Shown here in pieces: positions 1-56,896 of a stretch of DNA of 64,000 nucleotides; the stretch's first letter is position 1, and every line of letters begins with the position of its first letter. Where the stretch lies: contig OZ199838.1 of the NCBI GenBank assembly GCA_964304625.1, positions 15,614,929-15,678,928 of the forward strand, read 5' to 3'. A program made the translations under genes and the position numbers. A model generated the notes under the pieces. That model saw nothing but the letters and a program-made list of their open reading frames with translations. It ran no database searches and was not told the origin of the DNA. Origin of the DNA: Kudoa neothunni. Its lineage: Eukaryota > Animalia > Cnidaria.

Positions 1-75
1 ATGGACCCTGATGCAACATCACATGATAAAACTGATGAAAACGAGACAACAGCAGACGATCAAGAAAGAAAATGA
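1..75 (+). CDS. 3' end (acidic tail) of an upstream five-Kunitz paralog, copy 0, partial
   Basis: Reads MDPDATSHDKTDENETTADDQERK*, matching the QMDPD...DDQE tails of the complete copies. Its downstream flank is homologous to the flank after copy F. Confidence 0.85.
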   Translation: MDPDATSHDKTDENETTADDQERK

Positions 76-1140
76 TGACGCGAGACATTTTTTGTCAATA
101 ATTACTTTAATTCGTATATTTAGTTATTCTCATATTACAATCACATAAAATCATTAATATTCTCTAGCCATACATCCAAATTTGCAATATTTAGATTACT
201 CAGATCAATATGAGATTTTTTGTAATAAATTCCAGAATCGTTAAATTAAATTGAGTTTTATCATTAAAATATTTATATCAAATAAATTTATACCAAAATT
301 TGCCATACGCCAATAAACACCTCAAAACCTGAAAGGGATGACTATTAACAAATAACACTAAAAACTGCAATTCTGTAAAAATAACAAATAAAACTAACCA
401 TTTCCTATCAAATGTGTTCAGTAATATTGGGGGTAAGTTGAAAACTATCCTAAATAACTTACCTTCCTTTATAGTCCTTGTTGGAGCCGTCACTTTTGTC
501 ATAGTTGACATCGTTATTATTGTTGTTTTCTCTAAACTTCTTCCTTTTATTTTCTCAACAAAATCTAAGTTACTATTTTTTAAATATTATATGTACAAAT
601 ACTTTATTATTATGTTATTTTCTTGCGTTACTCTTTTTTTGTTTCTACGATATGTGAATTATAAAAAATGTTATGGGGGTTAGAAGTATTGGCGTTATTG
701 TATTCAATTTTAATTTTATATTAAAATATTTATCGAATGTTATACACACTTGTTTATATAAAAGGTTTGTTATAAGAAATTAAATAAAATAATGTCTGAC
801 CTTAAATAAGTTTATTTTAATCTGCAGTCAATTTAATAACTTAATTAAATTTTTTAATTTGGATGAATATTACATAGGTTATAAATTATTTTTAAATCAA
901 CATTTTTTGAGATTCGTGATATTACATTCATATTGATTGTGAATTAAATTTTTGTCAGAAAGAATACATGAATGTATACATAATTCGATGTTTAGCTAGG
1001 AGCTTTTATAAACGCATTTATTTTATTATATTTCTCAGAAATGATCAACTATTTACAGATTTATAGTATGTGAATTGTTCTATTCTATTTATCAAAAAAT
1101 CTAATCTTAAAGACCGTTCAAAAACAAAACTCGTTTTATG

Positions 1141-1235
1141 ATCAATGAATAATGCAATTGATTGGTCACTTGTATTTAGAAACATCGGCGTATTATTTAT
1201 TTAGCGACTTTTTCAATTAAATATTGGTATTTGTG
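1141..1235 (+). promoter_or_regulatory. Conserved family upstream module (ATCAAT-N10-ATTGAT, AAACATCGGCGTATTATTTAT, TCAATTAAATATT)
   Basis: The core motif recurs about 60-85 nt before every family ATG: 1180, 3792, 8379, ~15937(-), 22103, 31959, 34597, 42112(-), 46665, 50046, 55341. More distal flanks diverge. Confidence 0.7.
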
Positions 1236-1260
1236 ATTTCCATTTACTATAACTGAAAAC

Positions 1261-53779: not shown

Positions 53780-54510
53780 TGCTAAAGAGTGAACCACTCG
53801 GTTAAATGCTTTAACATATTGTTAAATCGATTTAGAGGAGTTTTTGCATACAGCTCTACCTAAAGAAACTCGTCTAAATAAGAATCCAGAACGGAGGAGT
53901 TAACCACTAGCATTCTCTTAAATTTTCTTTTGCAATTCCTCCAGTAGCATTCTACATGGTTGGTGTGCACTCCCGTAATTGGGTCTTTAAAATTTTTTTT
54001 ATGATTCACCTTTTTGCGAATGTATGGGGGAGTTACATTAATATTTAATGTATCATTGTAATCACCAAACACCCACCTTTGTTCCATAATGTGCCCCACA
54101 TTATTTGTACTTTTTGCAATCGGTGATTCGTCAACTTGAACCATATGACCAACCCCTCCTATTTGATAAGGATTTTTCGGGAGATGATTGGAGCATGTCT
54201 CGAAAATATTGGAACCACTGAATTGCGGTGTGGTTGGATGTACCAGACATGATACTTGCAGTTGTTACTGCTATACCAAGGCAATGGCAATGCAAAAATT
54301 TAATAAATTGAGGCTCCGAGATGTTTGCATGTTCTAAGTTTATGCGCTGCATCTGTAAATGAAGGAGTCTCTATTTTTTATGACTTACATTGTTCTAGAG
54401 AAGATTTCACTCTTTGGAGGAATCGGATTTAATACTCCTTTCGATCGGAGAAATTCTATTGCTGTTTGTTAGATATTTGACATACTCCACAGATCATCAA
54501 ATTCCATACT
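53780..54510 (-). mobile_element. Merlin/ISXO2-like transposase relic
   Basis: VQVDES, QRWVFG, VNHKKNFKDPITGVHTNHVECYW and SYLDEFL. Confidence 0.85.
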
Positions 54511-55423
54511 GACAGTTACAGGAATAAAATAAAATAATGAAACAAAGCATTAACAAAACTATAAAAAGCGGACGGTAATTAATCCGGATTATGTTTGTGT
54601 CGCAATAGTTCACTTGTGCCCAAATAGCATGAATAATGGTTTATGGAGCAATGTAAGCATCTAATGGTAAATTAGCAATGATAGGAATCTCATCAACTAA
54701 TTTTTATTAAATACATACAATAAGCATGACAACTAGACGGACTGAAAGAATAGAACTTTAAAAAAAAATGAAAAGTTCTGGGGTCAAAAATGACCCTAGT
54801 TGGTTCCTCACGTAATTTTTTTGAGTCGATCCTTCGAGGGCTAATATACTTAAATAATGTAGTATGGAATAAGAAGATGGGAAGCATTAGCTTAAAATCC
54901 CAGAAAATTCAATGGAATCTCTATAACACGTCTCGACTCCCTAAAGTTCTCGTCGACCATATTGGAGACCCCTGTCCTAGACATGTACTATTAAATTGTC
55001 ATACTTATGAAATCTATTTATTAAAATGAAAATATACTAAGCTAAATAATTACTTGATCCTCAAGAAGTATTGACTCGTAATACGGTATGTAGAATTCTT
55101 ATTAGTCTTATAGGTAAATTAAAGATTTGTATGTGAGAATATAACCACACGTTAGTTCTAATCTCAATTTTTATAACTTTATTTCACTAAAATTTTTAAT
55201 TAATTTTTTATAGTTTAAATTATTCTTCGGGTTTTATTTAAAGTGAGACTAACTAATATTGGGATTAAGTAAATCACTGAATACACTTTAACGAATATTG
55301 GATCTGTGAATGAAATTATTGATTGTCTCCTTTTCTTAATAAACATCGGCGTATTAGTTATTTAACGAAGTTCTCAATAACATAGTAGTATCTGTTAATA
55401 GAATTCCTTATATCTGAAAAAAT

Positions 55424-56896
55424 ATGTTATTTTTATTAATTTTTGTTGCGTTAAACATTAATTACTTTCATATAAAATCAGGTACATATACTATGTCCAC
55501 ATTAAATAATGTCATTATAGAGCCAGCACTTCCTTCCTATGAAAGGGATGTGGGTGAATTTAAACCAGGTGAAGATATAAACAACGAACTCACAAGATGG
55601 TATATTAATAATAAAACAGCTGAATGCGAAACTTTCCAATACAGAGGAATACAAGGCAACTTTAATAACTTTAGAACGGAAATAGAATGCAAAAGACATC
55701 GTAAATTCTCTATTGATGTAATAAAATAATTTTGTATAGTTGAAAATCCTATTTCTGATAAGATTGATGGGTGTCAAGATCCTCCGAAAAAAGAGGGGTC
55801 CTGCAATACTCTTAAAAAGACTGATCTATACACACAAAAATGGTCATGGGATCCGTCTACTGCCACTTGTGAAACTTTTTCTTACACAGGTTGCGGTGGG
55901 AACAGAAATAGATACGATTCAATTGAAGAATGCAAAATATTTTGTTATAGTATATTTTGTTCAAAATATTCGATTTATAATCACATTTTTACACGAAGAC
56001 GATGAATACGGGAAACCAACTGCAGCCGGGGGTTTAAGTAACGAACAAGATAAAAAAGAATATGCCGTTCCAAGTTATTTTGACTGTCACTTAAAACCAG
56101 ACCTTCAAACGAGTGAAGCTAAAATCAAAGCTATCGCATTGATTGATGAGAAACAATGTGTGTATGTTGCAGCAGGATTGAGCGACCCAGATAAAAAGAT
56201 AAGAGGAGCATTCGATACTATTAACGAATGCGTTAAAAAATGTTTCCGTAAATAATATTATCTTTATTTAAATAATGTTTCCATAGCATACGAGCACGAT
56301 GATGCAGCTGCTGAAACTAATATAAAAATGAAACAAAAAATACCAGCTTGTAGTAGAGTACAGCCTGACCAGTTTAATAAGCCAAGTTCACCATCCGACG
56401 TCAAACCAACAATAAGATTCTACTATGACCAAAGCAACAAGGGTTGTTCACGATTTGAGAGTTGGCCTGGAGTATTTGATAAATCTAAAAATAATTTTCC
56501 TTCCGCGGAAATATGCGAAAGTTATTGTGGATGGGGTAAATAAATCATTTAGACTAAAATAATTTCATTAAAATGTGAATAGATAAACCCGAACCTAAGG
56601 ATGCTATAGAAAGAAAACCTGCTTGTTATCAGCCTAAAGCTGGTGAATACAGCAAATCTGATAACACAAATGGGAACCTTAATGTTAAAAGATGGTATTT
56701 TGATAGTTCAGAAGGTAAATTTAAATGCGTCTCCTTTATGTTTGGAGGTCTCAATGGAAACAATAACAATTTTAAATCAAAAGATGCATGTAAAGCTATT
56801 TGCTGGGAGCAAATGGACCGCGACGAAAAAACATTTAATGAAGAGGACTTATATCAAAATACCAGCGATGATGAACAACCCACTCCGAGCTCATAA
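55424..56896 (+). CDS. Five-Kunitz protein, copy K
   Basis: Same exon structure with an open frame. Loop is PPKKEGSCNTLKKTDLYTQKW. Stop TAA at 56894-56896. Confidence 0.9.

Follow-up and report, generated by a model that had tools for sequence, protein, structure and literature searches.

Anticoagulants, immune modulators and toxins have repeatedly been built from Kunitz proteins. Penthalaris, a salivary protein of Ixodes scapularis, is a five-Kunitz anticoagulant of the TFPI-like type (PMC9865953), ticks are well known for their large Kunitz families (PMC3890586), and site-specific positive selection is known to act on the loops of snake-venom Kunitz proteins (PMC5107962). Here we describe an array of at least 11 neighbouring genes for predicted five-module Kunitz proteins in Kudoa neothunni (assembly GCA_964304625.1, contig OZ199838.1, positions 15,614,929 to 15,678,928; this stretch of 64,000 nucleotides is referred to below as the window). 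The array occupies window positions 1-56896, and the window has a guanine plus cytosine (GC) content of about 30%.

Gene copies were counted by tblastn of the open reading frames (ORFs) of the copy-2 exons against the window, which recovered ten full sets of five coding blocks (E-values 1e-31 to 1e-75) and the tail of an eleventh copy. A relaxed search of the window (E up to 5) returned no fragment beyond that tail, designated copy 0. The preliminary description of this locus had proposed an array of at least 11 paralogs, which is what the census returned, as well as 'fragments', which come down to a single one. The copies are as follows:

Copy 0, 1-75, plus strand: acidic tail, last 24 codons and stop, truncated by the window start; tblastn match to the tail of the K5 exon
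Copy 1, 1261-2719, plus strand: ATG to stop, six exons, intact
Copy 2 (reference copy), 3874-5312, plus strand: ATG to stop, intact
Copy 3, 8458-9899, plus strand: intact; K3-K4 intron open in frame
Copy 4, 14405-15856, minus strand: intact
Copy 5, 22184-23628, plus strand: intact; its sole in-frame stop lies within intron 1
Copy 6, 32045-33502, plus strand: K4 exon disrupted by a single frameshift
Copy 7, 34679-36119, plus strand: intact
Copy 8, 40557-42029, minus strand: K1 exon disrupted by a single in-frame stop; forms an inverted pair with copy 10
Copy 9, 50129-51585, plus strand: K4 exon disrupted by a single frameshift
Copy 10, 55424-56896, plus strand: intact; final copy of the array, 56896 being the last base of its stop codon

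Seven of the ten full-length copies (1, 2, 3, 4, 5, 7 and 10) are thus intact throughout, and copies 6, 8 and 9 carry one lesion each; the ten complete six-exon copies announced earlier stand as exon structures, but three of them are broken. The frameshift in copy 6 may be a sequencing error, because its K4 exon is otherwise identical to that of copy 7. One lesion in each of three copies is a point in favour of regarding the locus as an assembly artefact (alleles, or collapsed or expanded repeats) or as a dead pseudogene field, an account that we consider extremely improbable in the light of the substitution pattern and flanking sequences set out below.

The gene model was obtained by aligning the ten loci and transferring the copy-2 splice sites across, and all searches, alignments and folds were made exon by exon. 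In copy 2, it comprises the following features:

Upstream block, 3740-3873 (copy-2 coordinates), plus strand: conserved in all ten copies; putative shared promoter
Exon 1, 3874-3931, plus strand: putative signal peptide, 19 codons and 1 nt, followed by the phase-1 intron 3932-3970
Exon 2, 3971-4150, plus strand: module K1; Pfam Kunitz match of 47 bits; cysteines C3 and C5 only
Exon 3, 4190-4384, plus strand: module K2; Kunitz of canonical type with all six cysteines; reactive loop variable
Exon 4, 4434-4679, plus strand: module K3; four cysteines; predicted Kunitz fold without Pfam or PDB sequence match
Exon 5, 4719-4964, plus strand: module K4; four cysteines; Pfam Kunitz match of 33 bits; variable loop ahead of the first strand
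Exon 6, 5005-5312, plus strand: module K5; four cysteines; Pfam Kunitz match of 44 bits; then an acidic tail of 28 residues and stop

The ATG and the GT and AG splice dinucleotides are kept in 10/10 copies, as is the divisibility by three of the K2 and K3 exon lengths; the same holds for K4 except in copies 6 and 9. In the locus alignment, the conserved block 5' of the ATG extends over about 130 nt in all copies. The five introns are all in phase 1 and measure 39, 39, 43-51, 39 and 40-47 nt across the ten copies, three of the five being exactly 39 nt long in every copy (3932-3970, 4151-4189 and 4680-4718 in copy 2). Intron 1, at 39 nt, is in frame, and exon 1 and K1 can be read through it as a single ORF. 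We nevertheless regard it as genuine, and the proposed count of six exons per copy as correct, because a stop interrupts this intron in copy 5 and because the intron ends (GGTA..TAG) are kept in 10/10 copies. The sequence GTAAGT at 3901 was considered as an alternative donor and rejected, being unconserved and lacking any in-phase acceptor that would preserve the frame.

Exon 1 (58-61 nt) encodes a leader of 19-20 residues, whose hydrophobicity (maximum nine-residue Kyte-Doolittle value 2.8-3.6) agrees with the signal peptide suggested at the outset. The other end of the protein is a tail of 28-32 residues with 7-11 Asp and Glu versus 2-4 Lys and Arg, acidic as previously reported. The predicted product, about 410 residues long by exon arithmetic, is presumably secreted. 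The possibility of a polyprotein precursor was rejected, since no dibasic sites are conserved between modules.

The Kunitz fold consists of a two-strand hairpin and a C-terminal helix, secured by the disulfides C5-C55 and C30-C51, and a canonical domain has six cysteines in three disulfides, spaced C-8-C-15-C-7-C-12-C-3-C. When compared with the Pfam profile PF00014 (gathering score 21 bits), K1 (9/9), K2 (10/10), K4 (8/8) and K5 (10/10) scored above the threshold, that is, in every intact copy; the matches of K1, K4 and K5 begin at profile positions 10-12, leaving the N-terminal loop unaligned. Among solved structures, the best sequence matches of K1 were SmCI (three Kunitz domains), boophilin, TFPI and bikunin, and those of the K2 profile were the same four proteins together with HAI-1 and ixolaris; K5 matched SmCI, TFPI and boophilin best, with bikunin lower, and K4 had weak matches to collagen VI C5 and ixolaris. 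Module K3 matched PF00014 in 0/10 copies even at E ≤ 1, its profile found no PDB sequence at E ≤ 10, and its alignment to K2 by hhalign received a probability of 1.4%.

At the level of predicted structure, K3 resembles a Kunitz domain. Its AlphaFold2 model, built from an alignment of the paralogs and six distant relatives, has a mean predicted local distance difference test (pLDDT) score of 72.5 and shows a hairpin followed by a C-terminal helix. When the model was compared with the PDB by Foldseek, all 50 of the 50 matches listed were Kunitz domains (target template modelling (TM) score 0.64-0.75, probability 0.87-1.00), with E-values of only 0.03-0.3. The K4 model (pLDDT 62, core 77-82) likewise matched Kunitz structures only, with target-normalised TM scores of 0.52-0.79 for nearly all matches listed. 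We therefore count five Kunitz modules, four by sequence and K3 by predicted fold. The earlier claim of five Kunitz-like modules, one per exon, holds in terms of fold; by sequence, only K1, K2, K4 and K5 pass the PF00014 comparison, and K3 fails it.

The modules also differ in their cysteines, with six in K2, four each in K3, K4 and K5 (C2 and C4 being absent), and two in K1 (C3 and C5). The spacing in K3 is consistent with C1, C3, C5 and C6, and K2 alone among the five has the full canonical six. Judging from these residues, modules K1 to K5 would form one, three, two, two and two disulfides, respectively. Because K3, K4 and K5 of distant relatives have it too, this pattern is a stable design rather than decay.

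Loss of the C14-C38 disulfide is a trait that K3-K5 have in common with conkunitzin-S1, and conkunitzin, the beta-bungarotoxin B chain and dendrotoxin were among the top fold matches. Such likenesses would suit a venom or toxin-type Kunitz protein acting on ion channels, in the manner of dendrotoxins and the two-disulfide conkunitzins, and a passage in one source states that toxin genes often occur in tandem arrays (10.64898/2026.10.26.761191). We nonetheless judge a toxin role very unlikely: non-toxin Kunitz domains match the fold equally well, and the Kunitz toxins known to block channels each consist of one small, basic domain, whereas the proteins described here have five modules, about 410 residues and acidic tails, with no conserved dibasic processing sites at which the modules could be separated.

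A canonical Kunitz inhibitor presents a G-x-C-P1 reactive loop, with a P1 residue suited to the S1 pocket of the protease, and a secondary loop G-C-x-G-N. Among the five modules, the canonical reactive loop is confined to K2, which bears both loops, G-x-C-P1 and GCGG, in 10/10 copies. The P1 residue itself varies: six copies have Ser, three have Asn, and copy 2 alone has Lys (GPCKA). On the P' side of the loop, 6 to 12 residues separate C2 from the first strand, depending on the copy, and three copies have a five-residue insertion there. Ser or Asn at P1 is unusual for strong inhibitors of the trypsin, chymotrypsin or elastase type.

Substitutions were then considered exon by exon. The pooled ratio of nonsynonymous to synonymous divergence (dN/dS) was 0.18 for K1, 0.31 for K2, 0.30 for K3, 0.18 for K4 and 0.27 for K5 with the tail; the proportion of synonymous differences (pS) was 0.32-0.47 across exons, and the proportion of nonsynonymous differences (pN) was far below pS in every exon. 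The scaffolds are under purifying selection, and ratios this low in each exon identify the genes as real, constrained coding sequences. Together with splice sites that are intact in all ten copies, this argues against a dead array. The introns have diverged by 16-27%, less than the synonymous sites (32-47%), and so appear to be constrained too, in both length and sequence. Constrained introns as short as these are an unusual genome feature.

A sliding seven-codon window located the places where pN equals or slightly surpasses pS, chiefly the P' side of the K2 loop, the K4 loop ahead of the first strand, the linkers that start the K3, K4 and K5 exons, and parts of the tail. Within conserved parts of K1 and K5, a few windows of low divergence likewise have pN ≥ pS. 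Variation clusters at the K2 loop after C2 and at the equivalent loop of K4. The initial picture of conserved scaffolds with variable loops is therefore accurate, the loops of K2 and K4, the linkers and the tail varying and the rest being constrained. The same cannot be said of the 'pressure to diversify' that had been read into it, as exon-wide ratios are low and even the variable windows only bring pN to about the level of pS. Positive selection is not demonstrated, because an omega of about 1 fits relaxed constraint equally well, and tree-based selection tests are unsafe on this array because of gene conversion.

Evidence for such conversion comes from the pattern of identity among copies. 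In the locus alignment, the copies are 12-33% diverged from each other, and the nearest paralog switches from segment to segment along the gene. The longest identical tracts span 221-1022 nt, in pairs that are just 73-88% identical overall:

Copy 8 and copy 10: identical tract of 1022 nt
Copy 1 and copy 2: identical tract of 327 nt, from exon 1 to intron 2
Copy 9 and copy 10: identical tract of 236 nt
Copy 6 and copy 7: identical tract of 221 nt

Because these identical tracts lie in otherwise diverged pairs, we attribute them to repeated gene conversion that has reshuffled exons among copies, in keeping with the mosaic sharing noted in the preliminary description. At a larger scale, three duplications can be recognised:

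Two-gene unit duplication, 1180-5404 versus 31959-36208: 80% identity
Block duplication, 1-2914 versus 33425-36309: 88% identity
Inverted pair, 40444-42435 versus 54975-57013: 91.5% identity

The array has grown by tandem, two-gene-unit and inverted duplication, and these blocks, along with the mosaic exchange, bear out the expansion proposed for it. The 1022 identical bases of copies 8 and 10 could be taken as a sign of misassembly. However, the copies differ by 12-33% and have distinct flanks and distinct intervening transposon remnants; an allelic or assembly artefact is unlikely because of the duplications themselves, the conserved upstream block and the transposon-bearing intergenic gaps.

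The interpretation that we favour, and to which we give roughly even credence, is that the locus encodes an array of secreted multi-Kunitz proteins resembling protease inhibitors, each joining an inhibitory K2 to binding or spacer modules, and jointly providing dosage and a repertoire of specificities. Judging from its loops, K2 would probably act as a standard-mechanism, substrate-like inhibitor of serine proteases, and the differences in P1 and the P' loop among paralogs would set target specificity. The conserved, disulfide-reduced modules K1, K3, K4 and K5 and the acidic tail are probably non-inhibitory and may serve for binding or spacing, through contacts with exosites or matrix, the modules being joined by charged linkers in the putative secreted chain. 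The array would therefore supply dosage plus a modest range of specificities, generated by duplication and exon-scale conversion.

Several observations weigh against this interpretation. All K2 loops except that of copy 2, nine out of ten, present Ser or Asn at P1, and three copies have a P' side lengthened by the five-residue insertion. Of the five modules, the four other than K2 possess neither the canonical loop nor the C14-C38 disulfide (BPTI numbering). The loop dN/dS, moreover, comes to about 1 and does not exceed it. Some of these points would be better accommodated if the genes encoded structural or adhesive secreted proteins, such as components of a matrix, egg envelope, cocoon or cement, in which Kunitz modules serve as stable scaffolds for cross-linking or binding, the array mainly provides dosage and the loops are simply under relaxed constraint. 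Such a role would account for four modules that are non-canonical yet highly conserved and for a P1 that is mostly Ser or Asn; a loop dN/dS of about 1 is expected of unconstrained segments, and gene conversion together with a shared upstream block would suit a co-expressed dosage array. It sits less easily with K2, in which every canonical inhibitor feature is kept, including GPCKA in copy 2, and with paralogs that are still 12-33% diverged rather than homogenised. On balance, we consider a structural role rather unlikely, and retain the inhibitor-like array as our working interpretation.

We then searched for relatives of the family with a profile of K3 and K4, using HMMER against 1.84 billion representative proteins (E ≤ 1e-3). 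Of the 13 proteins matched, ten were short unnamed ORFs from Logan/ENA assemblies (P0001-3, P0005-9, P0011 and P0013), 27-48% identical to the window modules and, in the cluster listing, all singletons without names or accessions. These ORFs run in frame from K3 into K4, or have K5 after K4, and retain the four-cysteine patterns. After the last cysteine motif of each module, they have Arg, Gly or Ser followed by Asn or Lys, residues that match the coding of a phase-1 GTAA donor, and the introns are probably shared by the genomes of the relatives as well. The family, its module order and its reduced disulfides are thus common to several diverged, AT-rich and unannotated genomes. The remaining three matches were set aside: P0010 consists of EGF-Kunitz repeats and is unrelated, and P0004 and P0012, which are long and repetitive, were dismissed as spurious on visual inspection of their sequences (no domain scan was made).

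Neither the K3 and K4 profile search nor the word search recovered an annotated protein from any organism. The latter, a word-indexed search among candidates of 148-472 residues, used as query the K3-intron-K4 ORF that is open in copy 3; it gave no match, and none of ten ATG-started window ORFs was present in the protein collection. A metagenome scan with K4 patterns and a scan of prokaryote-genome contigs both found nothing. The metagenome scan with K5 patterns returned 11 loci, all of them generic Kunitz genes without K3 or the specific K4. Five of the metagenome contigs (L003, L004, L005, L006 and L008; GC 37-58%) have 3-5 canonical Kunitz units in a row, and were rejected as family members for the same lack of K3 or the specific K4. 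Literature searches yielded no described family with such an architecture. The family is thus lineage-restricted, unnamed and missing from annotated protein sets. This agrees with its initial description as lineage-specific and unnamed: the only relatives found are some ten ORF fragments, with their modules in the same order, and no described family of this kind came to light.

A more ambitious possibility is that the array represents an unnamed penta-Kunitz family restricted to an under-sampled invertebrate clade, with a cryptic Kunitz-derived K3 that is overlooked by present domain libraries. In such a family, exon-sized gene conversion among the paralogs of the array would recombine a hypervariable, inhibitory K2 'warhead' exon with conserved targeting modules, producing a combinatorial repertoire of effectors against the proteases of hosts, prey or pathogens. 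We regard this extended scenario as distinctly unlikely. Should the source be a parasite or predator, the family would be a candidate interface repertoire, along the lines of the host interface suggested at the outset; otherwise, it would represent an ordinary lineage-specific expansion.

The gaps between the genes contain several mobile elements. A piggyBac-type element (47278-49221, minus strand) includes a transposase ORF of 462 residues (47415-48803) that matches PF13843 nearly end to end with 272 bits, and has 37-nt inverted repeats on both sides (47278-47314 and 49185-49221; 89% complementary); its database relatives are at most 47% identical, and the named ones, from insects and a tick, about 40%. 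A second piggyBac-type remnant (25366-26669, minus strand) has a partial Pfam domain match on one ORF, its coding sequence being split over several ORFs. Further remnants of DNA transposons, with MULE transposase, DDE_3 (Tc1/mariner-type) and ISXO2/IS1595-like domains, are located at 11480-11797 (minus strand), 43921-44501 (minus strand) and 45469-45636 (plus strand). A weak K1-like match at 44765-44872 (minus strand) was dismissed as a chance match within a Tc1/mariner-type remnant. A repeat roughly 1.1 kb long is present twice, at 79% identity, upstream of copy 5 (20538-21652) and downstream of copy 9 (52060-53180), and contains no recognised protein domain.

The gene that bounds the array on the right (about 57584-63311, plus strand) has several exons encoding tetratricopeptide repeats (TPR), ankyrin repeats and a leucine-rich repeat region. 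This architecture resembles that of tonsoku-like protein (TONSL), although protein and PDB searches gave no named TONSL match: with the TPR-ankyrin exon as query, the protein search yielded nothing beyond unnamed ORFs and generic ankyrin proteins, with identities of no more than 34%, and the PDB search only ankyrin repeats. Rfam and tRNA scans of the window were empty.

Among described systems, penthalaris offers a close parallel in overall design, in that it is likewise secreted, composed of five tandem Kunitz modules and part of a multigene family. In contrast to it, the array proteins have a single canonical three-disulfide module, a K3 that is invisible to Pfam and an acidic tail, and their genome has introns of 39-51 nt and a GC content of about 30%; no named tick protein emerged from the K3 and K4 profile or the word search. 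TFPI, bikunin, boophilin and SmCI provide the best PDB matches for K1, K2 and K5, share the tandem arrangement of one module per unit and have a BPTI-like loop comparable to that of K2. They possess two or three canonical modules each, however, as opposed to five modules of which four are disulfide-reduced, and their identity to the array modules is at the level of the generic domain only. The tail of TFPI is basic, and that of the array proteins acidic. Conkunitzin-S1 resembles K3-K5 in having a Kunitz fold without C14-C38 and was among the top structural matches, but it is a single-domain cone-snail neurotoxin of about 60 residues with two disulfides, and no specific relatedness to it was seen. 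Membership of a TFPI or penthalaris-type family therefore fails, with no named relative found in the profile and word searches and four of the five modules non-canonical, and so does membership of the two-disulfide toxins of conkunitzin type, given five modules and about 410 residues.

The multi-Kunitz mode is thus a familiar one, while the family itself, as far as sequence comparison can tell, belongs to no named group and has no specific relationship to any. Set beside these systems, the array offers a natural example of a fixed pattern of disulfide loss (three, two and one bonds) kept in distant relatives, of what is predicted to be a Kunitz-fold module that has drifted past detection by sequence profiles, of a module-per-exon architecture with ultra-short phase-1 introns of 39 nt, and of gene conversion on the scale of exons, by which paralogs exchange a variable exon bearing the reactive loop.

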